In this document: one piece after another, positions 10,321 to 45,005 of the stretch | Position numbering within the stretch: position 1 is the stretch's first letter | Layout of the letters: each line of letters starts with the position of its first letter | Origin: Octopus bimaculoides | Taxonomy: Eukaryota | Length of the DNA stretch: 45,062 nucleotides | Assembly (NCBI RefSeq): GCF_001194135.2 | Contig: NC_068981.1 | Coordinates: forward strand, 23,937,131 to 23,982,192 | Direction: 5' to 3' | Program-made: the position numbers and the translations under genes | Notes under the pieces: model-generated | The model's database searches: none | Told to the model about the DNA's origin: nothing | What the model saw: only the letters and a program-made list of their open reading frames with translations

Positions 10321-11256
10321 GACTGGGTGGACGAAAGAAAGAGTTTTTGATGATATTGTTCCAATGAATAATTACAACCTTTTTAAAGAAAGAACATTTA
10401 ACTTAAAAGTTAGTGTCTAGCAAATTCGACACTCAGTCAGTGAGTCAGCCAATCTCTCCTGTTCTGACATCCCTTTTAGCCACAATACAGTGGTGCATAG
10501 AAGTAAATTTCTGGTTAACTCATCTCTTCTTAGACACAGCATCGAAAATATTCTTCATTATGCCAAGTATTTACAGACCATTTTAAACCAACAAACAGTT
10601 GACATATTTGCATTGGTTCATATTTGTAGGAAGAGTAGCATGGAAAGCAGTTCAAGATTGTTGCAGAAAATATTGAAGCCGCATGGATTTAGGGTTACAT
10701 TTTTAGACTCACGATTGTTGCAAGGTTGTACTTTCGATTCCCAGACCGGATGACGTCTTGTTTTTTTCCTTTTTCTTTTTAATTTTCATCAAAATATTTC
10801 ATTTCCTGTTGTTCCATTTTGCTCAGCTGAAAATGAGTACACCCCCACCCCCACCCCGCCGCGATAGGTAAAAATCCTCGAAGTAGAAACAGTACTGCAC
10901 TGTATATATTTTTTTATTATGTGTATATATTTATTTTATTATAAATGCAAAACAACACCACAGAGGAATCGACGTAAGCATAAATAACACTGGTCAACAA
11001 AANNNNNNNNNNNNNNNNNNNNNNNNNNNNNNNNNNNNNNNNNNNNNNNNNNNNNNNNNNNNNNNNNNNNNNNNNNNNNNNNNNNNNNNNNNNNNNNNNN
11101 NNNNNNNNNNNNNNNNNNNNNNNNNNNNNNNNNNNNNNNNNNNNNNNNNNNNNNNNNNNNNNNNNNNNNNNNNNNNNNNNNNNNNNNNNNNNNNNNNNNN
11201 NNNNNNNNNNNNNNNNNNNNNNNNNNNNNNNNNNNNNNNNNNNNNNNNNNNNNNNN

Positions 11257-11288
<32 letters not shown>

Positions 11289-11793
11289 GTGCACCTATTT
11301 GGCTTGTATTTGATCTTTGAAGGGTAACGTTTGTTCAACATTAAAGTATTTTGGGTTGTAAAAATGTAACCTAGCTTTGAAAACAATGACATTTGAGTTG
11401 TTATGGTTTAACCATAAAGTGCGGTCATTATGTGACTGTGAGATCTAGCATGTTTTATGAATAAATAATGTGAAGCAGCGAAAGAATGCTTGTTTTATAT
11501 GTTGTGAAATATTACATGCTTCCAGTAGAAAATATTTTCAAGTAATCTGTTTTTTTTTTCTTTGTAGTCATATGATGTGGTTTAACTCCAAGTTATTCTT
11601 GATCAAGGAAACCTATGAGGAAACCCATCTTTACTTCTGCACATTGTGCTTAATTCTAAAAGATTAAATTATCTAATTTGTAATTTCTATTTTTAAAATG
11701 ATAGCGTGCTGTATGAGGTTATTTGACTGGTATTTCTAGTAGGCTGAGTGACTACAAAGAGGCTTCTGGAAGTGGTAGGTGTTCAGTCTAAAG

Positions 11794-12100: not shown

Positions 12101-12281
12101 GACTGTGTAGTAAGAAGCTTGCTTCCCAACCACATGGTTCTAGTTTCAGTCCCACTGCGTGGCACCTTGAGCAAGTGTCTTCTACTATAGCACGGGCCTA
12201 CCAAAGCCGCGAGTGGATTTGGCAGACGCGAAACTGAAAGAAGCCTGCTATGTATGTATATATTTTTTTAAGTATATATTT

Positions 12282-12313
<32 letters not shown>

Positions 12314-12505
12314 TTGTACTCCCCTCCATCACTTGACAACCGATGTTAGTGTGTTTACGTCCCCGTAACTTAGCAAAAGAGACCGACAGGATAGGTACTA
12401 GGCATACAAAGAATAAGTCCCGTGGTCGATTTGTTCGATTAAAGGCGGTGCTCCAGCATGGCCGCACTCAAATGACTGAAACAAGTTATAGAATAAAAGA
12501 ATATA
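12097..12505 (+). mobile_element. Full SINE: tRNA head, CORE-like domain, internal microsatellite, LINE-like tail
   Basis: gtgtagtaagaagcttgcttcc head, ggcaccttgagcaagtgtctt CORE-like segment, (GT)n at ~12250-12312, tail ggtgctccagcatggcc...tgactgaaac. Confidence 0.85.
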
Positions 12506-15039
12506 ATAGAATCTGGGTAGCAGAAAGCTACATGTACGCTTGCCACAACGAGGGGTTTTCACGAGTAACATGTGATCCGCAAACATGTGATCCACTAACA
12601 TGTGATCCACAGTACATCACATCAAATGTAGCAGAATAGGAATGCTCAGAGATATAACTTCCAGGGCTAGGAACAAACTACTTACATCCCTGGCCATTAT
12701 GACATGTCATAGATGATTAAGTATAAGTAAATGTGTCAGATATTTAGTGAATGTATCTATTTATTAATGCGTCTGAGGAAAAACAGTGAACGGTAGAGCA
12801 TGAATAACATTGAGCGTTTTCGTGTATGTGATGTGTATGTGTAGACATTTGCATGTGACGTATGGGTGTACATATTCGTATTTGGGTGGGTACATGATAG
12901 CATGTATGCGTATATGTGTGTGAGCATGTGTGTAAGTGTCTGTGTGAGTGTATGTGTCTGATGAATGAGTTGTGTTTGTACTTTCTTGCTGCTATAAAGC
13001 GCTTAAAGAGCTTCATAGTTGAATGGAAACCTTTTGGCGTCAAATTGGCTTGTCAGTTTGACTTCTTGAATTGGTACACAAACATTCATATACTTAAAAG
13101 CTTGCACACACACACACACGCGCACACACACACACACACACACGCACACACACACTCACACCACACACTCATGTATTTATACACGTATATAAACATTATA
13201 TGTGTGTGTGTTTGTGCATATATATGTATATATATGAGTATATATATATATATATANNNNNNNNNNNNNNNNNNNNNNNNNNNNNNNNNNNNNNNNNNNN
13301 NNNNNNNNNNNNNNNNNNNNNNNNNNNNNNNNNNNNNNNNNNNNNNNNNNNNNNNNNNNNNNNNNNNNNNNNNNNNNNNNNNNNNNNNNNNNNNNNNNNN
13401 NNNNNNNNNNNNNNNNNNNNNNNNNNNNNNNNNNNNNNNNNNNNNNNNNNNNNNNNNNNNNNNNNNNNNNNNNNNNNNNNNNNNNNNNNNNNNNNNNNNN
13501 NNNNNNNNNNNNNNNNNNNNNNNNNNNNNNNNNNNNNNNNNNNNNNNNNNNNNNNNNNNNNNNNNNNNNNNNNNNNNNNNNNNNNNNNNNNNNNNNNNNN
13601 NNNNNNNNNNNNNNNNNNNNNNNNNNNNNNNNNNNNNNNNNNNNNNNNNNNNNNNNNNNNNNNNNNNNNNNNNNNNNNNNNNNNNNNNNNNNNNNNNNNN
13701 NNNNNNNNNNNNNNNNNNNNNNNNNNNNNNNNNNNNNNNNNNNNNNNNNNNNNNNNNNNNNNNNNNNNNNTATATATATATATATATATTTATATACATA
13801 TATATATATGCGCATATATACATACATATATAAACATAGAGGGAAAAGGAGAGAAAGAAAGTAAGAAAGGGGAGATATGAATATTTTGGAGAAAGGAAAG
13901 CAAGGAAAGGGTAAATAGAGTGACGACGAAGCAGAGGAAAAACGATACAATTTGAGAAATAAATTGAGCTAAGTTTGTAATTTGCTGGTAAATGCTACGA
14001 GGATTAATGAATAGTTATCTGAACTAAATCTGGATTTTTTGTTACTTGTTTCACTATCATATTCTATTATTCTGACATTTTTGTCTTCGTTCTTTATTTT
14101 TGTTATTCTTAGATTATTTATTTTGTCTTGTTCACTTTCTCTTTTCTCTTTGCTTTCTATTAATTATTACTGCAATTATTATTTTCATTATCTTTTTTTA
14201 CCTCCTTATTTAGTTATTTCTCTTTCTTTCTCCATCTTCTTTCTCATTTCGTTAATTTTGCTTTCTCTTCATTTTATTATTAGAGTTTCTTTTTTTGCTT
14301 CTTTCCTTTTAAACATTCTAGCATTCTCTATAACTCTAACCCTCTCTTTAACACTGACTCTCTCTCTCTCTCTCTCTCTCTTATTTTCTTTTTATTTCTC
14401 TCTCTCTCTCTTTCTCCGTCTCTCCAGCTCTCTTTCCACTCAATGCTGCCTTCAAAATGGCGATTGATTTCACACTAACTGCAAAACATTTTATATTATC
14501 AGTCTTCTTCGTGTTTTGATTAATTCTTGAATAGGCCGACTCACTAATGGAAATGAAAAATACAAAATTATGAAATCGATGTCAAAATAGCAAACATGTT
14601 GTCATATTGAGAACAAGATTTAAAAAATAAATAAGAAAGTAAGAAAAAGAAATAGAATTCCAATTATTTATAGATAATTAGAAATATGATTTCTTCTTTA
14701 AAGTTCTGCATTGATTTGTAATAAATCAGTTTTAACAAAATAAAAAAAAAATTGCTTAAAATAATACTGTAATTTTTAATGTCTTCGGGATATTTATTTC
14801 TATACTGTTATTTTTATTATCATTATCATCATCATTTTATCATCCTTCTCCTCCTCCTTATCATCATCTACACCAGCATTAATATCATCATCATCATCAT
14901 CATTACCGCCACCAACAGCAACTGCAGCTGCTCTAGTAGATGTTCCAAGCGGAGTTCTTCAAATTTTGGATAAATATTTTACTTTCAATTTCTAGGAACA
15001 TGAAAACAATCTCGGGTTTTGTTTTCTTTCTAAAGAACG

Positions 15040-15130: not shown

Positions 15131-15734
15131 TCCAAACACAACAGCGATTTCAAAAATAACAAGAAAAATAGCAAAAATAAAACTTCCAGTGATAACATAT
15201 AAACACAGAACAACTGGAATAGCAACATGTTGTCTAGTAGTGTTGCCTTTTAAAAACAACGGACTGTTGAGGCAGGAGAAATTATGAGTCTTTCCCCATC
15301 ATGAATTGGTGCACCCAAATATATACATATATATAAATATATATATATATATATAAATATNNNNNNNNNNNNNNNNNNNNNNNNNNNNNNNNNNNNNNNN
15401 NNNNNNNNNNNNNNNNNNNNNNNNNNNNNNNNNNNNNNNNNNNNNNNNNNNNNNNNNNNNNNNNNNNNNNNNNNNNNNNNNNNNNNNNNNNNNNNNNNNN
15501 NNNNNNNNNNNNNNNNNNNNNNNNNNNNNNNNNNNNNNNNNNNNNNNNNNNNNNNNNNNNNNNNNNNNNNNNNNNNNNNNNNNNNNNNNNNNNNNNNNNN
15601 NNNNNNNNNNNNNNNNNNNNNNNNNNNNNNNNNNNNNNNNNNNNNNNNNNNNNNNNNNNNNNNNNNNNNNNNNNNNNNNNNNNNNNNNNNNNNNNNNNNN
15701 NNNNNNNNNNNNNNNNNNNNNNNNNNNNNNNATA

Positions 15735-15778
<44 letters not shown>

Positions 15779-15789
15779 AACATATATAT

Positions 15790-15950
15790 ATATATATGAC
15801 GGGCGTCTTTCAGTTTCCATCTACCAAATCCACTCGCAAGGCTTTGATCGGCTCGAGGCTATAGTAAATGACAGTTGCCCAAGGTGCCCCGCAGTGGGAC
15901 TGAACTAGGGACCATGTGGTTGGGAAGCTTCTTACCACACAGCCATACCT
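15790..15950 (-). mobile_element. SINE 5' half (CORE-like family)
   Basis: Reverse complement matches 12100-12250 (ccttgggcaa, aaagccttgcgagtggatttggtagatggaaactgaaag). Confidence 0.85.
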
Positions 15951-18329: not shown

Positions 18330-18595
18330 GGCAGTATGGTTGCGAAGCTTGCTTATCAGCCACGTAATCTTCGGTTCAGTCCCATTGCGCAAGACCTTGG
18401 TCAGATGGCGTCTACAATAGTCCCAGGTTGATTAAAGCCTTGTGAGTGGACCTGATAGGCAGACACTAAAAGAAGACTGCTGTATGTTTGTATGTATGTA
18501 TGTATGTATGCATGCATGCGTGCAGATTTGTGTTTTGTTTTACGTATTTATTCTCATGCATGTAGTTGCATATCTAGACATGCATGTATGTATGT

Positions 18596-18626
<31 letters not shown>

Positions 18627-18785
18627 CGTGTGTGTGTGTGTATGTGTGTGTGTATGTGTGCGTGTGTGTGTGTATGTGTGCGTGTGTGTGTGTGTACCTA
18701 TATGTGTGCTTATGTTTGTGTGTCTGTGTTTCTCCATCTCTCCGCCGCTTGACAAACAGTGTTGGTTTGTGTACCTCCTACTAAT
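18330..18785 (+). mobile_element. Degenerate SINE with an expanded internal microsatellite (~18480-18725)
   Basis: Head ggcagtatggttgcgaagcttgc and aaagccttgtgagtgga; after the repeat, cgcttgacaaacagtgttggtttgtgtac. Confidence 0.7.
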
Positions 18786-19089
18786 TTCGTGTATATGTAT
18801 ATATATGTATGTCTATGTATTTATATGTATTTATGCATGTATGCATATATGTGTATATATATGGATCTCTATACGCAGATCAATGTGTCTATATATGGTT
18901 GTATACTCCTATATATTTGTTTTTTATGTATCTATCTTTGTGTATCGATGTATATATAAAAAATAATTGTGTATATGTATATGTAACTTTGATAACTTTG
19001 ATAGATTTCGGCCAATATAGGCCCAGGCCATGTATAACTCAATAGCATTACCTGGTGAAGCTTTTTAGCCTTATATGGGGCACCATAGC

Positions 19090-21275
19090 CCACTCTAGCA
19101 AAGAATTATTATTGTTGGAGACACATCCGGGTGTAGGAAGTTGATCCGGGATCTTTTGAAGAAATTTGTTCAGTGAACATCTGAATTTTATGGGATCCGT
19201 TCCCGTTTTGACGTATTTTGGTATGGTATTAAAGAGAGCTGGACCGGTTGAGGTAAATTAATTGCGACGTAATGTAATGAGTTCGAGTTTTGTAGTGGTC
19301 GGATAGCATGGGGGCCAAATCTCAGATGGATTTTAAAATTGATGCCAACATCATTTGTGCGCTATTGATGGAATATTTTCCACATAACAAATGATATAGC
19401 GCTCCCGGCGGCATTGGAGAGAGTAGAGATTGAGATTTTGAGTGGACCCCAATAATCAATGCCTCTCATGCCGTTTATCTTTCTTGTCATTGACCTCTGG
19501 AGTGCTTCTACTTTCATAATGCGTTGCTTCGTATGGGGGAACCACAGTGGGCAACAGTACTCAAGGGAGAGTCGGACAAAAGTAAAGCAGAGAAGGATGA
19601 TGGTGTAGGCATCTCTAGACCGGAAAGGTCTCAGCTTCCAGGAGCACATTTTGCGGGCCAAGTAAACCTTGCTGTTTATGTGGGAACTCCAGCTTAGATT
19701 GTTATCAACAATTACTCAAAGAGCTCTGGTGTTGTTGGATGACACTAGGGAGTCGCCCGAGGGAAGAGCATATGGTAATTTCAGAGTATCCTCTTTCTCA
19801 AAGTGGATCAAATAAAACTTACCTTCATTTAAAAGCATATTGATTTTTTCCGCCCGTTGGACAATAGAAAACAGATCTGACTGAAGGTATTTTCGGTCTC
19901 TCATGCCGTTTATGGCTTTCTGAAGTTTGGAATCATCTGCAAAGATTTTCAATGTAGAATGTTTGATGACATCTACTATGTCATTGATGTAAATAATGAA
20001 ACGGAGTGGGCCCAACACAGTACCTTGTAGGACACTACTACTGACTTTGGCTGAGCTGGATCGTATTTCCTCAAATACAACAGGTTGGGTTCTGTTCGTC
20101 AAGAAACACTTTATCCACTGCAGCAGCTTTTTACGGATTCAAATGTTGGATACTTTCTTCAGCAGGATTTTGTGGTCCACTCAATCAAATGCCAGGCTGA
20201 AATCAAGGTATATGACATCAGTGTTGGAGCCCTCTCCCAACGCTTTTAAGATGTCAATAAAATGGTGCAGAAGCTGCGACAGGCAGTTCCTGCCATCACG
20301 GAAACTATGCTGGTTGGGGTTCAGTAGATTGTTGCCTTCGAGGAAGTGAGTTATTCGCGGTCTCACCACCATCTCAAATACGTTAATGATATGAAAAGTG
20401 AGTGAGATCGGACAGTAATTCCCTGCAAGAGATTTGTTACCCTTTTTGATGACTGGAACGACAGACTGGGTAAGAAAATGACCAGGAATGCAGCCTGCAT
20501 GAAGTGAGTCTCTCCAGAGATCAACTTGAGGGGGTGCAATTATTTGATGTCGACACATCTTCAGGACAGTGGTAGGGAACTTATCGGGACCTAGTGCCGA
20601 GTTGTGCTTGATCTTATCTATTTCTGTTAGGATATCAGGAGCACTAAAGTTATGTCAGATATAGTTAGTTGAGGGTTTATATCACTGATACTAGCCAGAT
20701 CAACTGCATTAGGGTTACTGAAGACAGAGCAGTATTGTCTCAGCAGTATCTCGCACATGGATTTATGTTGTTGTTGTTTTTTTCAAACGAAAACAATATT
20801 TTGGGATTGAGTTTTATTTTCTCCATGGCCCAACTCTCTTCAGCTGCTGCTCTTTGACTGTTAATGATGATCATCATGCTTTTTTGGAGATCGTGTTTTT
20901 TGATTCGAGTGAAGAAATGGCAGCCGAATGAGTGCGTTGCTGCTGACAGTATTTAAATTGGTTGATTTTTCTTGTTATTTCTTTTTATTTTTCTGATATT
21001 TACTCTGCTATTTCTTGAGATTATGCACTTAGATTTGTATACTGATCTTAATAGAGTATGTTTTGCGCATATATTTCTCACAATATCTACAAATGTCTGC
21101 CATGATCAGTTAATGTTGAAGAGGGTGTGTGCATGCATGAAGGCCCAATCAACTTGTGAAAGATCATGATTGATCGCATCCCAGTCTGCGTTATGAACAT
21201 CCATAGTTTCAAATGGATAGACTGGAGAGATATCACTGGATTTGATCTTTGGGTGGTAGAATCTCAGGTCGCAGA
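19090..21275 (-). mobile_element. 5'-truncated, disabled CR1-clade LINE (RT and C-terminal region)
   Basis: ORF pieces YCPISLT..NQHSFR..DVIYLDFSLAFD, QGTVLGPL.FIIYIND..FADDSKL, VRLSLEYCCPLW.P, GPQLFNTIP..IPDQ. Confidence 0.92.
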
Positions 21276-21278
21276 GAA

Positions 21279-21547
21279 CTAACAAAATTAGATTGTTGCA
21301 ATAAGAATACAAGCTATAAACAATACAATACTATAAGAATTATTATTGTGAATATTAAGTTTAGTTAGATATCATTCTTATTTTTATTATTATCAATTAA
21401 TTAATAAATTAAATGAATGTATTTCTAAATATAATTATTTAGTATAATGAAGATATCTTATTTGTGATTTGTAATTAATATTAAATTACTAATATAATGA
21501 TGTATTTTATAGTAAATACAAGTATTTACACTAGAAAGATTCAAAAT
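21279..21547 (+). repeat. Left arm of ~270-bp AT-rich inverted repeat
   Basis: ctaacaaaattagattgttgcaataag...ctagaaagattcaaaat is the reverse complement of 22310-22584; about 90% identical by eye, with one divergent 16-19 nt patch. Confidence 0.95.
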
Positions 21548-21977
21548 TTTTTCTTTAGATAGGACTTCCGGATAATACCTTCCTTACTAACTACTGTTCT
21601 GTCTGGTGTGGTCTTTGACTTCCTGTTCCAGGCATGGCAGTTACATAAGTAATCATCCTTGCCAAAATATGCCTCCACCTCCTCACGGGTCACTTCAATA
21701 CTGGTGATTAAGTACTTGCCACCGCTTTTCGGGTCCGTCACCTACACTTTGGACATGCTGCATAAAGGCAGCACCTGTCCACTACACTTGAATTGTACGT
21801 CAGTGGCACCCTTCACGTGTCAGCTAACCAGCGCCGGCTTGTGCCTCAGCCCATAGACAGGCCTTTTGATAAAGACAGGCACTGGCTGTGCTGATTCTAG
21901 CTCCTGTGTTGCTCCAGCTCCTGTGTTGCTGCCCCTATCTCCGCCATTGGAATGAAAACACATGAGAAGGTGGCCGC
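21541..21977 (-). pseudogene. unc-5: Disabled fragment of netrin receptor UNC-5 (N-terminus, Ig1, start of Ig2)
   Basis: Reads PVPVFIKRPVYGLRHKPALVS*HVKGATDVQFKCSGQVLP...KV*VTDPKSGGKYLITSIEVTREEVEAYFGKDDYLCNCHAWN...IRKSYLKKKF. Compare vertebrate UNC5 from memory: P.FL.EP.DAYIVKNKPV.L.C.A.PATQIYFKCNGE...IEVSRQQVEELFG.EDYWCQCVAW...RIAYLRKNF. Stops at 21820-21822 (in place of a Cys) and 21742-21744; a 17-bp tandem duplication at 21897-21930 shifts the frame. Confidence 0.85.
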
Positions 21978-22309
21978 ATGTACGTGTGTATATGTATTTG
22001 TGTATATATATATGAATATGTGAATATATGTCTATGTATATATCTATATATGTGTATGGATGATTTTTACGAGTATGAGAGTATATATTTGTATGTATAT
22101 ATATGTGTGTGTATGTATGTGTATATGTATGTAAATGCGTATATATATATATGTGTGTCTGTTTGTGTGTGTTTGTGCTTATGTGTGTTTGTGTTTGTGT
22201 TTGTGTGTATGCTTGTGTATATGTATGTATATCTTTAAGGTTTGTTATCTTAATCTATATAATAATCTAGAATTTGGAAAATTTATTTTTTAGTGGATTA
22301 ATTCAGAAT

Positions 22310-22584
22310 ATTTTGAATCTTTCTAATGCAAATACTTGTATTTACTGTAAAATACATCATTATATTAGTAATTTAATATTAACTACAAATCACAAATAAG
22401 ATATCTCCATTATACTAAATAATTATATTTAGAAAGACATCCATTTAATTTATTAATTAATAGATGATAATAATAAATGGTTTTATTTGACTTACTAACT
22501 AAACTTAATAACCACAATAATAATTCTTATAGTATTGTACAGTTTGTAGCTTGTATTCTTATTGCAACAATCTAATTTTGTTAG
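22310..22584 (-). repeat. Right arm of ~270-bp inverted repeat
   Basis: Reverse complement of 21279-21547. Confidence 0.95.
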
Positions 22585-23389
22585 GTCTGAAAGAATTAAT
22601 AAAATTTGGATATATAATATTTATAGTCCTTTATCTAAAAAACAATATTGAAAATATTTATCGCGGATCGGTTCTCAATACTTATGCTTTTGTTTATCTT
22701 ACTTTATTTTATTTACTGAGTTCTCTCTTCCATAATATACGTAAATAAGGACATTTACTTGTTAGTTACTGTGAATAACCCTTATTTAAGTAACTTCAAA
22801 TTTGGTTACTTCTGAAAAGCTCCGTAATATTTTGATATCCATTATTATAGCTTAGCTTTATATCTATGGGGTAACATAGGCTGTAATTATCGTAGCTCTA
22901 AGTTTCTCTTCCTGTTTTTACAGAATTCTCCCTCCGATACACTACGTAAATAAAGAACATTTTTGTTTTTTTGTTAGTTACTCTAAACAATCTTTATAAT
23001 ATGGAAAGATGCGAGCAAGAGAAATAATATTGTTAAGATTAAAAATCTGGAAAATTACAGGACAAGTTATTACACTTGGAAAAGTTCAGGACAACTTGTT
23101 GCATCTGGTAAAGGACAGAACAAGAAAATGTTTACTTAGAAAATTGCAGCTAAGGATAAAATTTCAAATAAAATATTCAGATTTAGAAAATATTAGCCTT
23201 TATTAAAACTAAAAGTTTTAACAAAAGTTATTACTCCTATTTGTTATTACATGTTACTTGTATTAAAAATTTAAAATAGATAGATATACATACATACATA
23301 CAACATACATACAACATACAAAATAGATAGATATACATACATACATACAACATACATACATGCATACATACATGCATACATACATATAA

Positions 23390-23712
23390 ACTAGCACTCC
23401 GATGGTTGCGACGACGAGTGCTGCAGTTGATTGGAGAAACAAAAGAGTTTGCTCGTGAAATTAACGAGCAATTGGCTGAGCGCTCCATAGGCAGGTGTAC
23501 TCTTAACGTAGTTTTCAAGGAGGTTCAGTGTGGCACTAAATGTGACAAAGCTGGCACTTTGTAATATAGGTACTACTGAATTTTTCCAGGTAAGTGGACT
23601 GCAGCAATGTAAAATAAAGTGTCTCGCTCAAGGACACAATGAATCTAGAGGTGTCGAGAGCACAACGTAAAGATCATGGGTTGAATACCACTAACCACTA
23701 AGCCACCCGCCT
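23390..23712 (-). mobile_element. tRNA/CORE-like SINE (same family as 44805-45005)
   Basis: Minus strand has head gggtggcttagtggttagtggt and ttgtgtccttgagcgagacactt; shares gctcgtgaaattaacg..ggctgagc.ctcca with 44805-45005. Confidence 0.75.
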
Positions 23713-24484
23713 TCACATTTAAATACATACATATATGCATGCATGCGTGCGTACGTACATACATAGATACATACGTACGTACATATATATATACATAAAT
23801 ATGTGTATATACATATATACGTACATATAAATACATATATACATGTGCGCGCGTGTGTGTGTGTGTGTGTGCAGCGAACCAAAACCTAAGCCAGGATTTG
23901 AAATTGAATTCACTGTTTGAAACAAGTCCTCGGCCAATTGTTCTCGCTTTTGCAGTAAGAGATTAATGGGAATAACTAACCTCTTAGAGCTTTTCGAGTT
24001 CTCTACGAACCAAATCTGATGAGAGAGGAAGAATCCTTTGTTTTTGGTTTGATCTAGTTCAGTTAGAAAGATATAAACACAGCAAAAACGTTCATGCTCT
24101 TCGGTCACTCGGCACCAACCAAGATCGCATCTTCCTTCTTTCTCCCGGTACTGATGGAAAAGCAACTCCTTTATGTAAGGGACAATACAACTCTTACCGT
24201 TTCTATCTGCCTTGACTCTTTTACTCTTACCCGTCTCTGGCAGTCACAGAGATGAAGCTAACTACAAAATATCGCACAGAACGCACTGGAGATCTACAAA
24301 TACCTTAGGTACACAAACAAGTATTAGAAGTTATATTTTCTGCATTGTAACGACATAATAGTTATATTGATAAACATCATCTTAATAATTAATTAATATT
24401 GTTCTTCAGTCATTCATTTTTCCGATGCATCTTGGCGTAAAACTTGGTTGTTATAGTTGGTGACTCCATCGTTACTTATGTGGA

Positions 24485-25978: not shown

Positions 25979-26272
25979 NNNNNNNNNNNNNNNNNNNNNN
26001 NNNNNNNNNNNNNNNNNNNNNNNNNNNNNNNNNNNNNNNNNNNNNNNNNNNNNNNNNNNNNNNNNNNNNNNNNNNNNNNNNNNNNNNNNNNNNNNNNNNN
26101 NNNNNNNNNNNNNNNNNNNNNNNNNNNNNNNNNNNNNNNNNNNNNNNNNNNNNNNNNNNNNNNNNNNNNNNNNNNNNNNNNNNNNNNNNNNNNNNNNNNN
26201 NNNNNNNNNNNNNNNNNNNNNNNNNNNNNNNNNNNNNNNNNNNNNNNNNNNNNNNNNNNNNNNNNNNNNNNN

Positions 26273-26304
<32 letters not shown>

Positions 26305-26369
26305 TAGCCTTTTTAGGTGTTTCAATCATTAGACAGTGGCCATGCTGGGGCACAGCCTCGAAGGGGTTT

Positions 26370-27378
26370 AATCGAATGAATCTATTACACCTCTGATGAT
26401 TCGCAGAAATGAAATTAGTTGAGCTTTGCTGCTGATGTCTGTACTTCCATCGATTTGTAAGGACCTCAAGTTTTCAAGTTCATCTTTTGCTTCAGTGAAA
26501 TGTTTGCGGAGCAGATCATCAATGTCTCGCGAAATGTCTTGAATTTTACGAAAGATCGTGTGGGCAGACAAAGGAGTGGTCTTAATTTGTTTGACGGCTT
26601 CATCACTAATCATTGTGCCAACGGCGATCTCCAAGGCTAATAATGTTTTCGGCATCAGAATGTAGTCTTTTTCTTCTTTACCAAAAAGCTGGCAAACTTG
26701 TAACTAGCGATTTGAGCTTTCTCGGGAATAGAGTAAAATTTCTTCAACCTTTTTCATTGAATTTTAAAATTATTTTTACCATTTCAAAGTATTCTTTTAT
26801 CTTGTGCTTATGTTGCGGATGATTTGTTATCAAATGACGTTGAAGTTTCCTGGAAACCATCGCTTCATTTGAGAGTGTTGTTAAATAAACCATACAAAAA
26901 AGAACCGAGTTGTCTTTTTCCGATAATATAAAACCATATTGGATGCAATTTTCATTATATTTTTGTTTTGTTGAGGTGGACTTTTTGTTCTGGTGTTCGT
27001 CTTGTTTGCTATGAGTCTCTTTCTCATTTTTCTGAGGTCTCAATAAATATTTGTCCTAGTTTAAATCTAAAACTAAAAATCGATTAAAATTAACATAAAA
27101 TAATTTATGTAAATTATAAATATATCAAAAATTAAAAACTATTAGGTCTACTAAACAGACAATCCCGGTTTAAATGCAAAACTGCTGTTCGTCGTGTAAT
27201 GTAATTAATTTGTATTTACCGTATTTTACGATTTATATAATTAATTTATATTTACGCTTGAACTTTGCGAATGTTCTTCGATCGTTGTTTCCCGAAGATC
27301 CCGAAAATAATTTTCGCGACACTCCAGGAATCTATCACGGCACACCTTTGTTCGCAGCACACTGTTTCACAGACACTG
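26370..27378 (-). mobile_element. hAT (Charlie/Buster, ZBED5/SCAND3/FAM200-like) transposon, 5' half
   Basis: Left TIR cagtgtctgtgaaacagtgtgctgcg at 27378. BED-finger remnant QYGF..FCMVY.TLSNEAMV.RKLQRHL, and SLQIDGSTDISSKAQL. Homologous to 34166-35100. Confidence 0.88.
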
Positions 27379-30109: not shown

Positions 30110-30258
30110 AATGAAATAAAGTAGCTTGCTTACCAACCGCATGATTCCGGGTTCAGTCCCACTGCATGACACCTTGGGCAAGTGTTTTCTGCTGTAACTT
30201 CGAACCGACCAAAGCCTTGTAAGTGGATTTGGTAGACGGAAACTGAAAGAAATCTGTC

Positions 30259-30289
<31 letters not shown>

Positions 30290-30745
30290 TCCCCCAACAT
30301 CGCNNNNNNNNNNNNNNNNNNNNNNNNNNNNNNNNNNNNNNNNNNNNNNNNNNNNNNNNNNNNNNNNNNNNNNNNNNNNNNNNNNNNNNNNNNNNNNNNN
30401 NNNNNNNNNNNNNNNNNNNNNNNNNNNNNNNNNNNNNNNNNNNNNNNNNNNNNNNNNNNNNNNNNNNNNNNNNNNNNNNNNNNNNNNNNNNNNNNNNNNN
30501 NNNNNNNNNNNNNNNNNNNNNNNNNTGTGTGTGTGTGTGTGTGTGTGTGTGTGTCTCGTCAACATCACTTGCCAACCGTTGCTGGTGTGTTTACGTTCCC
30601 GTGACTTAGCGGTTCGGCAAAAGAGACCGATAGAATAAGTACTAGGCTTACAAAGAATAAGTCCTGGGGTCGATTTGCTCGACTAAAGGCGGTGCCCCAG
30701 CATAGCCGCAGTCAAATGACTGAAATAAGCAAAAGAATGAAAGAA
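30110..30745 (+). mobile_element. SINE (CORE-like family) spanning an N gap at its internal microsatellite
   Basis: ggttcagtccc B-box, caccttgggcaagtgtttt, aaagccttgtaagtggatttggtagacggaaactgaaag; tail ggtgccccagcatagcc..tgactgaaa. Confidence 0.88.
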
Positions 30746-34165: not shown

Positions 34166-36260
34166 GCCTGCCAAATGTGTGCTGCAGCACAGCGGTGTGC
34201 TGTGATAGATTTCTGGACTCCCATGAAAAATATTTTCGAGTTTTTCGGGAAAAAACAATCCAAGAACATTCGCAAAGTTCGAGCGAAAATATAAATTAAT
34301 TATATAATTCTTAAAATACGGTAAATATAAATTAATTACATTACACGACGAACAGCAGTTTTGCATTTAAACCGGGATTGTCTGTAAGTAAATCGTTTAG
34401 TAGTCCTAGTAGTTTTAATTTTTGATTTATTTATAATTTACATACATTATTTTATGTTGATTTTAATCGAATTTTAGTTGGACAAATTTTTATTGAGAAC
34501 TCATCAAAACGAAAATATAGTGAAAATTACATCCAATATGGTTTTATATTATCAGAAAAAGACAACTCGGTTCCTTTTTGTATGATTTGTTAAACAACAC
34601 TCTCAAATGAAGCGATGGTTCCCAGAAAACTACAGCAGCATTTAATAACAAATCCTCTGCAACATAAGGACAAGATAAAAGAACACTTTTGAGATGCTAA
34701 AAAATAATTTTAAGATTCAATGAAAAAGGCTGAAGAAATTTCACTCAATTCTCGAGAAAGCTCAAATCGCTAGTTATAAGATTGCCCAGTTTTGGGCAAA
34801 GAAGAAAAAAAGCACTTTCTGATACCGAAAACATTATTTTACCAGCCTTGGAGATCATCGTTGGTATAATGATTAGTGACGAAGCCGTCAAACAAATTAA
34901 AGCCATGCCTTTGTCTGCCCACACGATCTTTCGTAAAATTCAAGACATTGCGTGAGACATTGGTAATCAGCTCCGCAAACATTTCACTTTAGCAAAACAT
35001 GAACTTGAAAATTTGTGGTGCTTACAAATCGATGAAAGTACAGACATTTGCAAGAAAACTCAACTAATTTCATTTCTCCGAATAGTCAGTGGTGGTAAAA
35101 TCATAAGTCAGTTTTTCTTTTGTTGTGATTTGAAGGAAAGAACGACAAGAGAAGATGTGTTTAACCTGGTAAATCAAATTGTCGTATTGAGAGGGATGCA
35201 GTGGCAAACTTGTATTAGCGTTTGCATTGATGGCGCTCCACCCATGCAGGGTCGAAAACAGGGCTTCGTGGTTAATGTATTACAAACAAAAAAAATAGTT
35301 AAAACTGTACATCGCATGATTCACCACGAAGTTTTGGTGTCAAAATCTCTAGCTGATGATCTCCTGAAGACGATGGACAACGTTGTTAAAATGGTGAATT
35401 ACATAAAATCGTATTCCCTACGGTGCAGACTTTTTGCATCCTTATAAATTCTGATTTTAAGTGTTTACTGCTTCATACAGAAGTGCGATGGCTTTCTAAA
35501 GGAAAAGTGCTCTCTGGATTTATCTCTTTGCGAACTGAAATAATAGGTTTCATCGATGCAGAAAATTCAGGATTTGAATTTCTTAACGATGATAATTGGT
35601 GTTTGGAAGTAGCATTTCTCAACGATCTGTTTATGAAGTTGAAAGTTTTAAATTTGAATCTGCAAGAAAATATTACAATTCCAGAAAAAAAATTAATGTC
35701 TTTCGCCGACAAGTTAAAACTGAGGATAAGGAAAGTTAAAAACTCGCAATTTGATTGCTTACCAGTCGTAGAAGCTTTTCCAAACAAATTTAAAATTTTG
35801 TCAGAAGTGCAGAAGACAGTAGAAAACCTCTCTGTATCATTTTCTAAGTATTTTCCATCACTTGATTATCAAATGTACGAGTGGGTCATCAATCCTGTTC
35901 GCAAGATACGACAGTACACACCTGCCATTAACATTAACAGAAGAAAAATTTAAGAGACTTGAAAAACGATCCTGAGCACAAAGCCTTATTTTCTGTTCTA
36001 GAATTGTCAGAACTTTGGATTTCGTTTTTGAACTAATATCCTCGATTAGCTACTACAAACGTTAAAACTCTGTTGGCCTTTGGATCATCGTATCTTTGCA
36101 AAGTAGGCAGCTCTGTGCTTATGAAAGTAAAATAAATAAAAGGGAACGATTACAGATGGTAGACGAGGAGCTACGTATTTGTTTATCTAATTTCGAGCCA
36201 CGCTTTCACAAAATTCTTTCTCAAAATCGATTGCATCCTTTTTACTAAAAACATTATTAT
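34166..36260 (+). mobile_element. hAT (Charlie/Buster-like) transposon with disabled transposase; right TIR not found
   Basis: LQIDESTD, CIDGAPPMQG, HRMIHHEVL and LLHTEVRWLSKG motifs; degenerate left TIR at ~34166; stops and frameshifts. Confidence 0.93.
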
Positions 36261-36278
36261 TGTATTAAATTACCTATA

Positions 36279-36790
36279 TATCTTTTATCTTTTACCGGTT
36301 TCAGCCTCAGGCTAAAGTCATGCTGGTGCATCACCTGTAGTTACTCGGTGTTGTTTCCGGGATTGTTTTTGGTGAAGCAGCGGAGCTGCTCTTCTTTGCA
36401 TTTCCTGCCGCGACATGGATTCATCTGGTATTTCAGATAGAAACCTGTCCAGACGTTCCTTGAGAACTTCCACATCAACACCATGCAGATCTCTAAAGTA
36501 ACCAGGCAGGATGTTGAACAATTGCTGGCTCTTGGAACCCAGACTATTGCAGTACTGTGTCTCTATTTTAGATGATGAAGACGGGATCTTTGGTATGATG
36601 CAGTGCCATCCAGTTCGAGGATTGGTATAACTGTCAATTCCAAAATTGGGCGCTAAGCCCTCCAAGATTATCCAAATATATAGCACCTCATATATCTCGT
36701 CTTCTCTCCAGGGAATATAGACTCTGCGCCTTTAGCCTCTCCCAGTAGCCCATCTTTTGCATCGAGTCAGTCTTCTTTTGCCTGTTGGTG
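36279..36790 (-). mobile_element. 3' end of a CR1-clade LINE, including tail
   Basis: RLKAQSLYSLERRR, IWIILEGLAPN, QQLFNILP..RLDRFLSEIPDE; tail gatgcaccagcatg...ctgaaaccgg(taaaaga)2. Confidence 0.88.
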
Positions 36791-37702: not shown

Positions 37703-39334
37703 ATCATCATCACCACCACTACTTCATTTGAAATATTCTTCCAATTATTTATCAATCAAAAAAATACCTGTCCAATAAAATTTTTATCCCTTCTTCCATT
37801 ACATACATGTATGTGAATACATACACACACACACACACACACATACACACAAACACACACACACACACATGTATACACATATATATATACATATATATTA
37901 TATAGATACACACACATGTAAATGTAAACACGCACAAACACATATATATACAAAGCATATACATTCACAGACACACGCTATGTACATATATATGTGTGTA
38001 TATANNNNNNNNNNNNNNNNNNNNNNNNNNNNNNNNNNNNNNNNNNNNNNNNNNNNNNNNNNNNNNNNNNNNNNNNNNNNNNNNNNNNNNNNNNNNNNNN
38101 NNNNNNNNNNNNNNNNNNNNNNNNNNNNNNNNNNNNNNNNNNNNNNNNNNNNNNNTGTGTGTGCGTGTGTGTGTATGCATGTTTATCTATATATCTATAT
38201 ATGTACAACTATATATATATATCATATATATACATATATATGTGTGTGTATATGCATATAAATGCACACACACACATACAATATTGTATTTCGTCTCTTT
38301 TCATGAGTTCAATGCTTTACAGTTTATTCCCAATTTTCAATATATTTCCAATATATCAATTTCTCAGAGATTTCCAATGATATTAAATTTGCAAAGTTTT
38401 ATTACTTAATCCATTTGGTTTCAGAAAGTTGCGATTGAAATACACACAAACGCACACACACACACACATACACACACACACATGCACATATTTTGCATAT
38501 ATACACAAATCGTCATAGAAAATTACAACATATATTCAGACAGACTTGCGTACATACCTACCCACATACATACAGACACACACACGCATACACTCATATA
38601 TATATATATATACATAATATATATACATACTTATACTCCCCCACAAACACATATATATTGGCATGTAGGTAGCTACATATGTGTGAGAGTAGGCATGGGT
38701 CTGTATCATATATGCTTTCATATCTGCATTTGTATGTATGCATGCGTATATATGTGTCGGGACGTGGGCGTGGGGTGAATAAAGGTAGAATTTCAAAGAA
38801 GATCATATGTCCAATTGGCCAGGTAGTACTACGCTTTTCTAAACCTTTTATGAATTTTTAATAACAGAAAGTAGATTAAAACAGTTGGAAGCATGGCTAC
38901 GTGGTTAAAACGTTAGGTTCTAATCGCTCGGTTCGAGTTTATGTGATATTGCACTGTACTTTGGGGTATTTGTCTTCCTTGCCTTCTGTTGACCAATGAA
39001 TGCTATGTCAATGTAATTTGAAAGGCGGACAGACGGTGGCTATATGGAAGAATGGTATAACCTGACGCATGGTCGGACCGTCAGCGGTCTGACCAATGTT
39101 TTCGTTGCGGCTTATTTTAATACAATGTTTATGTGTACATTTTCATAAATGCTTGTCTGAGCACAATTCAATGCAAGCATGAAACATCTGACGAAAGTGA
39201 AATATTAGAAGCAAATCGAAATATTGCCCAATATTGACCTCAAAACTGTGCGACCCGATCTCATTTCCGAGGTTATTTTAGTGGTAAAAAAGAGTTGTTA
39301 TGCCAAAAACAAAGTTTATTTGGTAGCCTTTATA

Positions 39335-43714: not shown

Positions 43715-44455
43715 CTAACATACAAAGGGAAAAACGTTGCACAATACTAAAAGAAATAGACAAAGCCGTAAATTTCGCAGAATTGCCTCCTTTGAATAAA
43801 GTACACAAAGAAGAAAGAGTGACGTGGGCAAAAAAGATATATGAAGAGACACATTACAAATGTAGTTTTTACTGACTAGTGCAGAGTAACATTAGATGGA
43901 CCTGATGGATGGGCAAGGATGCGGGTGTTAAATGGAAAAAGTCAGCCAACACGATTAAGAAGACAGCAGGGTGGTGGAGGAATCATGTTTTGGGCTGGCT
44001 AGAGTTGGAGGAGACATTATAGGCACATTTAAGTTTGCTGATGGAGTCAATATAAATGCTGATAATTATTGCAAGTTTCTAGATGACAGCTTCTTCCATT
44101 GGTACAAGTCAACAGCGCGAAGTTTCCCGTTAAAGAGCATATTTAGGCATGATAATGCCCCTTCACACTCTGCCAAACTCACTAGTAACCATTTAGCTAA
44201 GAAAGGTTTCAAAGAACATAAGATAATGGAATGCTCCCACCCAATCTCCAGATCTCAATAAACAAGTTGAGGTCAGTTTTTTAAAAAGATGTATGTTTTA
44301 ATGGTAAATAATATTCAAACAAGGATTTACTATGGGAAGCAATAAAAACTGCTGCAAGTAATATTAAAAGTAAGATTGTTGAGAAATTGACAAAATCAGT
44401 TGATGAGAGAATATCTAAAGTTATAGATGGTAAAGGAGGCTATATAAAAATGTAA
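43715..44455 (+). mobile_element. Tc1/Tc3-type (DD34E-like) transposase remnant
   Basis: PPLNKVHKEERVTWAK, VVFTD*CRVTLDGPDGW, FRHDNAPSH, degenerate SPDLN and RISKVIDGKGGYI. Confidence 0.85.
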
Positions 44456-44804: not shown

Positions 44805-45005
44805 GCTGGCACTCCGTCGCTTACGACGTCGAGGGTTCCAGTTGATCCGATCAACGGAACAGCCTGCTCGTGAAATTAACGTGCAAGTGGCTGAGCACTC
44901 CACAGACACGTGTACCCTTAACTTAGTTCTCGGGGATATTCAGCGTGACACAGTGTGACAAAGCTGACCCTTTGAATTACAGGCACAACAGAAACAGGAA
45001 GTAAG
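44805..45005 (-). mobile_element. SINE body (same family as 23390-23712)
   Basis: Aligns by eye with 23395-23590. Confidence 0.75.

Follow-up and report, generated by a model that had tools for sequence, protein, structure and literature searches.

Chimeric retrogenes produced by template switching of long interspersed nuclear elements (LINEs) are known as U6-L1 and other bipartite and tripartite chimeras (Gogvadze, Buzdin et al., PMC2104539), chimeras of messenger RNA (mRNA) 5' exons with LINE-1 have been ascribed to 5' transduction or trans-splicing (bioRxiv 10.1101/2025.02.02.635956), and animal Pack-TIR elements, which carry terminal inverted repeats (TIRs) around a captured gene fragment, arise mostly by transposition-independent gap filling (PMC8277862). 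Here we compare with these systems a locus from Octopus bimaculoides, within a stretch of 45,062 nucleotides (contig NC_068981.1, positions 23,937,131 to 23,982,192; hereafter the window), in which a ~440-base copy of the start of the gene for the netrin receptor UNC5 lies broken between the arms of an inverted repeat and beside a decayed LINE. Our leading interpretation, to which we give a probability of roughly 40%, is that the locus is a non-functional mosaic left by one complex LINE-associated insertion into microsatellite DNA. Its parts, in window coordinates, are as follows.

18985 to 21274, minus strand: 5'-truncated, decayed non-LTR (long terminal repeat) retrotransposon, the LINE (RVT_1 matches, relatives and tblastn).
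21275 to 21547, no strand assigned: arm A, an inverted copy of 22309-22588 (inverted repeats I1/I2, blastn and alignment boundaries).
21544 to 21560, minus strand: 17 nt (AT CTA AAG AAA AAA TTT) matching the start of the next exon, exon 3 (YLKKKF; parent YLKKRF), by tblastn to the parental models P0382 and P0383.
21561 to 21961, minus strand: equivalent of UNC5 exon 2 (signal-peptide end, Gly-rich linker and entire Ig1 domain), pseudogenised (Pfam, PDB and identity to the parent).
21742 to 21744, minus strand: in-frame TAG in place of a glutamate (parent SKVEVTD).
21820 to 21822, minus strand: in-frame TGA in place of a conserved Ig1 cysteine (parent LVSCHVK).
21896 to 21912 and 21913 to 21929, minus strand: 17-bp tandem duplication, TCTAGCTCCTGTGTTGC / TCCAGCTCCTGTGTTGC in plus-strand letters (repeat family D12, 94%).
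21962 to 21977, minus strand: 16 nt, GCGGCCACCTTCTCAT, the 3' end of parental intron 1 (polypyrimidine tract and acceptor, with AG changed to AT).
22309 to 22588, no strand assigned: arm B, the partner of arm A, surrounded by ordinary AT-rich DNA.

Like the chimeras of PMC2104539, the locus has a 5'-truncated LINE as its 3' part, joined directly and in the same orientation to what is probably a copy of a cellular transcript on the 5' side of the LINE, with at most ~10 nt unassigned at either the LINE/arm A or the arm A/UNC5 junction; three pieces stand head to tail, and the host part lacks poly(A). Unlike in those chimeras, the middle piece repeats nearby genomic DNA in inverted orientation and does not copy a known abundant RNA (the orientation of such a piece carries no meaning unless its transcript is known), the LINE is a cephalopod non-L1 element, and the one candidate pair of flanking direct repeats is not significant. 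Nor is the host part a copy of a full-length RNA, as exon 1 is missing and the piece starts in intron 1; it could be full-length only if an unannotated transcript started at the end of intron 1. With the mRNA/LINE-1 chimeras the locus shares sense 5' exons of a giant, long-intron gene upstream of a LINE. However, those chimeras have their junctions at splice sites and include the first exon, whereas here the junction lies 17-19 nt into exon 3 with no splice signal, exon 1 is missing, and 273 bp of unrelated sequence separate the two parts. Like Pack-TIR and Pack-MULE elements (PMC8277862), the locus carries inverted arms around a host gene fragment present as a single copy, although no target-site duplication (TSD) stands at the arms and the fragment appears spliced at one junction. 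Finally, as in a classical processed pseudogene, a decayed coding copy crosses an intron site without the intron; in contrast with one, it includes intron 1 sequence, is only ~440 nt long, and has no mRNA 3' end, no poly(A) and no clear TSD.

The identity of the UNC5 piece follows from several searches. The minus strand of 21544-21983 is homologous to the N-terminal Ig1 domain of UNC5, matching Pfam PF25609 (Unc5_NetrinR_N) with E=1.6e-19 over profile positions 3-102 of 105 and human UNC5D, UNC5B and UNC5A structures in PDB with E=6e-12 to 3e-11. Its closest relative is the O. bimaculoides "netrin receptor UNC5B" XP_052833804.1 (82% identity over 116 amino acids), which we call the parent and which forms a cluster (P0241) with the older model A0A0L8HQ03. 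This relative was reached only through an exhaustive HMMER search; a word-indexed protein search with the UNC5 fragment alone as query returned no match, and octopus UNC5 was not found in the JGI metagenomes.

The UNC5 copy is without function. A functional UNC5 gene would have an open frame, the Ig cysteines, splice sites, and exons for Ig2, TSP1, ZU5, UPA and the death domain, whereas here a cysteine codon has become TGA, a TAG follows, indels shift the frame, the acceptor AG has become AT, and the window contains no further UNC5 exon. Alignment to the parent places a deletion of ~31 nt, a true frameshift, in the Gly-rich tract between VFIPMA and GSNTG, and a further 9-nt deletion where QPDDVYYVL corresponds to RP---VYGL; the region of the 17-bp duplication has a net gain of 4 codons. 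The stops, the indels and the dead splice acceptor were probably gained after copying. A preliminary description of this DNA, made from the sequence alone, had reported a reading frame running through Ig1 into YLKKKF: the homology does stay in that frame, but the frame is not open, given the TGA and TAG inside it. The 17-bp duplication at 21896-21929 and the absence of poly(A) at the end of the piece, both part of that description, are present as described; its extension of the frame upstream by deletion of one 17-bp copy is a coincidence, GSNTGAG and PVPVFIK sharing a frame with the duplication in place. We also rejected "ELES" as the ancestral N-terminus (compare GELLES in the invertebrate contig L001, below), as it is a product of the second 17-bp copy in another frame. 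All Rfam matches in the region were sub-threshold microsatellite artefacts, and no tRNAs were found there.

Ig1-type matches also occurred outside UNC5. Mollusc proteins of 970-1816 amino acids (P0242-P0250; for example the Haliotis asinina "hemicentin-1-like" XP_067654889.1) each contain 4-6 separate matches to the UNC5 N-terminal Ig1 type, so that large extracellular proteins other than UNC5 also use, in tandem, a domain that takes its name from UNC5. The protein P0245 (645 amino acids) is UNC5-like, with repeated Ig1 and Ig2 units (two Ig1 and three Ig2-like stretches) and an LDL-receptor-like Cys-rich tail instead of TSP1, ZU5 and death domains; this could reflect either an assembly error in the model or a genuine variant arrangement.

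The preliminary description regarded the UNC5 piece as derived from complementary DNA (cDNA), in part because no intron interrupts Ig1. Two vertebrate gene fragments (P0036 and P0040) do read through an intron located inside Ig1. In the invertebrate genomic contigs L001 (ERZ25069853) and L002 (ERZ25073254), however, Ig1 is a single exon, with an acceptor of the form (Y)nCAG|G in phase 1, 12-17 codons ahead of the LPxF motif, and a donor directly after (I/V)A plus 1 nt. An intron-free Ig1 is therefore uninformative on cDNA origin. The intron inside Ig1 of vertebrates is absent from the invertebrates examined, which makes vertebrate gene structure an unsafe basis for calling cDNA at this locus.

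At its 5' boundary, the piece retains intron sequence. The RefSeq parental model (P0382) reads ...FYLLILWIFIH|SGVFIPMAAGQ across the exon 1/exon 2 boundary, while an older O. bimaculoides model (P0383) reads through the intron as MSMCIYSRYISMNGLRVYSVVVYIIYAATF|SGVFIPMAAGQ (...IIYAATF|SGVFIPMA); the N-terminus of the older model is microsatellite-like, as is typical of an initial exon extended into an intron. The window reads ...HAATFSCVFIPMA / ...THVHAATFSCVFIPMAE here, in agreement with the read-through of P0383 and not with exon 1 of P0382 (AATFS|C in the window, AATFS|G in P0383 and IFIHS|G in P0382). At the DNA level the boundary is ccaccttctcaT|GTGTTTTC, that is, a polypyrimidine tract and an acceptor ...ttctcAG|GT whose AG is mutated. 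Exon 1 (...LLILWIFIH) is absent from the piece and, since the leading 16 nt are intron 1, the exon 1/exon 2 boundary is unspliced. Upstream of these 16 nt homology ends, the sense strand of the parent being a G-rich, C-poor microsatellite where the window is C-rich. The hydrophobic stretch AATFSCVFIPMA, previously likened to the end of a signal peptide, is homologous to the parent: GVFIPMAAG is indeed the end of the parental signal peptide, encoded in exon 2, but the leading 16 nt (AATFS plus the mutated AG) match intron 1. Separately, the plus strand of 22028-22080 (MSMYISIYVYG*FLRV) loosely resembles the intron 1 read-through MSMCIYSRYISMNGLRV (tblastn E=2), on the strand opposite to the UNC5 piece; this likeness may be chance in a microsatellite or an inverted scrap of parental intron.

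The 3' boundary has a different character. In L001 and L002, homology to UNC5 ends exactly at ...IA, which corresponds to 21561, and gives way to GTAAGT or GTGAGT; dozens of short hits to open reading frames (ORFs) of genomic origin (ENA/Logan) end in ...[IV]A-C-[EK]-Y, which translates T|GT(A/G)AGT; and one of these hits (P0311) is identical to a protein of the gastropod Pomacea canaliculata (P0255) up to the intron site. A phase-1 intron between Ig1 and Ig2 was thus present in every genomic sequence examined, comprising vertebrates, L001, L002, the Pomacea-like sequence and dozens of others. The octopus UNC5 gene spans 434,649 bp for 384 amino acids and must accordingly be intron-rich; judging from the other animals, it very probably has the phase-1 intron after Ig1 as well. 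The UNC5 piece shows no GT at this site and runs 17-19 nt beyond it, matching octopus mRNA (YLKKRF), so that its exon 2/exon 3 junction looks spliced if the intron is conserved in octopus as in those animals. A partly spliced transcript is therefore a likely origin for the piece, the source most likely being an RNA from which intron 2 had been removed and in which the end of intron 1 was kept, or one that began shortly before exon 2. We rejected a splice from exon 3 to the adjoining arm, there being no GT at that junction.

Taken together, the two boundaries leave the earlier claim of cDNA origin half right: the argument from Ig1 is void and the 5' boundary is unspliced, while the 3' junction looks spliced. 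The earlier description had also named a single parental exon with a matching upstream intron as the mark of a genomic duplication; the single-exon Ig1 of L001 and L002 and the matching intron 1 correspond to this, but the 3' end of the piece crosses an intron site.

The piece is bracketed by an inverted repeat. Arms A and B are 89-94% alike (89.4% by blastn, including gaps, over 282 columns), with a p-distance of 0.082 and a Kimura two-parameter (K2P) distance of 0.087 over 269 aligned sites; between them lie the UNC5 piece, a GT/TA microsatellite (21978-~22260) and ~50-70 nt of unique AT-rich DNA. The inner end of arm A overlaps the exon 3 portion by an ATTTT microhomology (the last 4-5 nt), and the F and stop codons of "YLKKKF*" fall within arm A and are common to arm B. 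The outer end of arm A comes within ~10 nt of the 5' truncation of the LINE. A third copy of the arm was found neither in the window (blastn) nor in the JGI metagenomes, no TSD is visible around the arms except a possible palindromic TA, and the outer flank of arm B has no counterpart to the left of the LINE, which argues against a longer palindrome split by the LINE. We considered whether the arms could be TIRs of Tc1/mariner type that had duplicated a TA, and did not adopt this, as their termini are not known to resemble established ones and the match continues past the TA. The "AT-rich arm" that the preliminary description placed between UNC5 and the LINE is correctly positioned, but it is really half of an inverted repeat that brackets the UNC5 piece and the microsatellite.

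The LINE begins in the linker after the endonuclease domain (...ADWDAINHDLSQVDW; corresponding to amino acid 122 of its relative P0183 and 177 of its relative P0200), continues through the reverse transcriptase (RT) domain to the ORF2 C-terminus (...FRCSLNKFLQKIPDQLPTPG...NNSL), which ends at ~19045, and has a short 3' untranslated region that finishes in two copies of ATCAAAGTT without poly(A). RT homology extends from 21225 to 19087 in three frames (tblastn), and coding sequence is recognisable to ~21265. Argonauta hians supplies the closest relatives, the best with 52% identity (E=1.7e-130), which together with the UNC5 match indicates an octopod cephalopod as the source of the window. The matches were to the generic RVT_1 family and to unnamed proteins, which leaves the earlier CR1 label putative; the RVT_1 matches are each under the Pfam cut-off, and decay is evident from at least 6 in-frame stops and at least 3 frameshifts. 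No other copy of this LINE was found in the window. A 9-bp tandem repeat at the 3' end without poly(A) is compatible with a CR1/L2-type element and not diagnostic of one. The minus-strand order given previously, UNC5 piece, AT-rich arm and then a 5'-truncated LINE, was borne out, with a LINE of ~2.3 kb. Elsewhere in the window, an ORF at 36318-36686 (minus strand) ends in ...VEVLKERLDRFLSEIPDES..., similar to the FKxxLDxFL..IPDxP motif near the C-terminus encoded by this LINE (19090-19230). The ORF therefore probably represents the 3' part of a further LINE copy; it has no Pfam match.

The ages of the three pieces are roughly of the same order, agreeing only within about two-fold. The arms have diverged by ~0.043 per lineage, the UNC5 piece by ~0.08 per nonsynonymous site (21 of 116 residues changed), and the LINE by ~0.07, as estimated from stop density (at least 6 stops in ~690 codons). 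The comparison of LINE and UNC5 ages that the preliminary description proposed therefore places them in the same range and equates them only to within that factor.

The flanks of the 3.0-kb unit consist of the following features.

18345 to 18960, plus strand: a dispersed repeat resembling a short interspersed nuclear element (SINE; 18345-18480), TG/TA microsatellite, and a diverged repeat remnant (~18730-18790).
18968 to 18980, plus strand: left copy of a candidate TSD, TGTGTATATGTAT, a 13-nt exact match with 21985-21997.
21978 to 22308, plus strand: GT/TA-rich microsatellite (to ~22260) and ~50-70 nt of unique AT-rich spacer, with the right copy of the candidate TSD at 21985-21997.

GT/TA microsatellite of equal polarity stands on either side of the unit, and ~11% of the window is such sequence. 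The polarity of the right-flank microsatellite is opposite to that inferred upstream of parental exon 2. A single TSD around LINE, arm and UNC5, which the earlier description proposed to look for, did not emerge clearly: the only candidate is the 13-mer, which is uninformative. When 46-nt pieces of such microsatellite are drawn at random, they share a repeat of at least 13 nt with a probability of ~0.12, which is not significant, and the 13-mer itself is present 5 times in the window.

In the single-event interpretation, the minus strand would be a mosaic of 16 nt of intron 1, exon 2, 17-19 nt of exon 3, arm A, and 2.3 kb of LINE 3' sequence. Target-primed reverse transcription of LINE RNA would have halted early, and the nascent strand would have jumped to a local template, arm A being copied from arm B or from its transcript, ~330 bp away. 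A second jump would have led to a partly spliced UNC5 transcript (or to an RNA starting just upstream of exon 2), and a final join to the target would have occurred where the parental intron enters TA-rich repeat, with the junctions marked by short overlaps. Several observations are consistent with one event. The UNC5 piece lies on the 5' side of the LINE and has the same orientation; it crosses a conserved intron site and matches octopus mRNA; microsatellite of one polarity flanks the unit to left and right; and the ages are of the same order. In addition, since arm A is bounded by foreign sequence at both ends while arm B sits in AT-rich DNA and its outer flank has no counterpart left of the LINE, a later, independent insertion of the LINE into an inverted repeat already in place would call for a coincidence or else a deletion. 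Template switches in a chain, or nascent strands joined end to end, at the 5' end of a LINE insertion would leave such an arrangement, which proves neither. The locus shows most, though not every one, of the hallmarks published for template-switch chimeras (PMC2104539).

Other observations weigh against a single event. An unspliced 5' boundary is unexpected for a plain mRNA copy, and the RNA origin draws on 17-19 nt and on a comparative argument for the octopus intron. The middle piece is inverted nearby DNA, which would need a DNA template or a local antisense transcript, and the arm may instead be the end of a transposon. Adjacency alone means little where LINE fragments and microsatellites are this frequent. 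The 13-nt repeat TGTGTATATGTAT could be due to chance, with its right copy 7 nt from the end of the UNC5 piece. Finally, the UNC5 piece is about twice as diverged as half the distance between the arms, although gene conversion of the arms or RT errors could account for the spread.

For the template-switch chimera in three parts that the preliminary description proposed, co-orientation and direct abutment stand, while the candidate TSD lacks significance, the host RNA was not copied in full, and the ages agree only roughly. A more specific form, in which a CR1/L2-type LINE made a tripartite insertion by two jumps, to a local transcript or strand and then to a partly spliced pre-mRNA of the giant UNC5 gene, is in our view less likely than not. 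If it were true, UNC5 would have been transcribed in the germ line or early embryo, and LINEs regarded as specific for their own 3' ends would still retrocopy host genes via template switching. More generally, a single event at this locus would provide an example of a LINE-associated chimera outside mammals and fungi, unusual in its intron-retaining transcript and its inverted neighbouring DNA, and would bear on how retrocopied gene fragments are acquired in genomes where non-L1 LINEs dominate. Otherwise, the locus is a dead gene fragment of an ordinary kind, in an octopus genome full of repeats, and it has no bearing on UNC5 function either way.

Nearly as likely as one event is a series of independent ones, in which a short piece of UNC5 cDNA or DNA was captured between inverted repeats already in place or as filler at a double-strand break, by Pack-TIR-like gap filling or by templated insertion with fold-back copying of nearby DNA, and the LINE arrived, or was already present, beside it by chance. 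Arms of ~275 bp in inverted orientation around a gene fragment are Pack-TIR anatomy, and the non-significant candidate TSD, the intron sequence at the 5' boundary, the somewhat greater age of the UNC5 piece relative to the arm duplication, and the density of LINE fragments, SINE-like repeats and microsatellites across the window all suit separate origins. Set against this, the 5' truncation of the LINE meets the outer end of arm A within ~10 nt, the LINE does not continue beyond arm B and no arm is left of it, the arms have no TSD save the possible palindromic TA and no further copy in the 45 kb, and the exon 2/exon 3 junction appears spliced, unlike the genomic fragments that Pack-TIR elements typically capture.

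A pure DNA duplication, without RNA, of the end of intron 1 and the first 420 nt of one long exon is improbable. It would explain why 16 nt of intron 1 with a mutated acceptor were kept and would suit both the single-exon Ig1 of invertebrates and an extension of just 17-19 nt past the putative intron site. However, it needs the loss of the Ig1/Ig2 intron in octopus, and this is opposed by the presence of that phase-1 intron in every genomic sequence examined and by the 435-kb span of the octopus gene. The idea that a functional UNC5 gene or paralogue uses the piece as a live exon, the stops being RNA-edited (RNA editing is heavy in cephalopods, and both stops contain a potentially editable A) or errors of a draft assembly with N gaps, is effectively refuted by two stops, deletions of ~31 nt and 9 nt, the 17-bp duplication, an acceptor changed from AG to AT, the lack of a donor, a frame that ends in a repeat arm, the absence of any other UNC5 exon in the 45 kb, and the existence of an intact parent.

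Further repeats were observed in the window. The SINE-like repeat (...aagccttgtgagtgga...) has 4 diverged copies, at 18345-18480 (plus), 12114-12248 (plus), 15806-15905 (minus) and 30123-30251 (plus), which lie near TG/TA microsatellite or runs of N; the ORF at 12343-12639 looks like a translation of its conserved 3' half. Runs of N occur at 10990-11290, 13250-13800, 15300-15760, 25990-26300, 30300-30560 and 38000-38160 and are mostly flanked by microsatellite; as these draft-assembly gaps sit in simple repeats, repeat lengths in the window are unreliable. The ORFs at 26368-27043 (minus), 35013-35953 (plus) and 43971-44261 (plus) look like transposase remnants of hAT/GTF2IRD2-like (...DESTDI..KAQLISFLRI...) and mariner-like (...HDNAPSHSAKLT...) types, a likeness that Pfam supports for none of the three. 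A PDB search with the ORF at 43971-44261 gave chance-level matches only, and Pfam gave no match to other ORFs of the window. A second dispersed repeat, for which ARAGORN calls no tRNA, has a copy at 23395-23720 with (TACA)n tracts on both sides and a tRNA-like end, ...ggttgaataccactaaccactaagccacccgcc, at its minus-strand head, and another copy at 44810-44993, the two being 77% alike over 186 nt.

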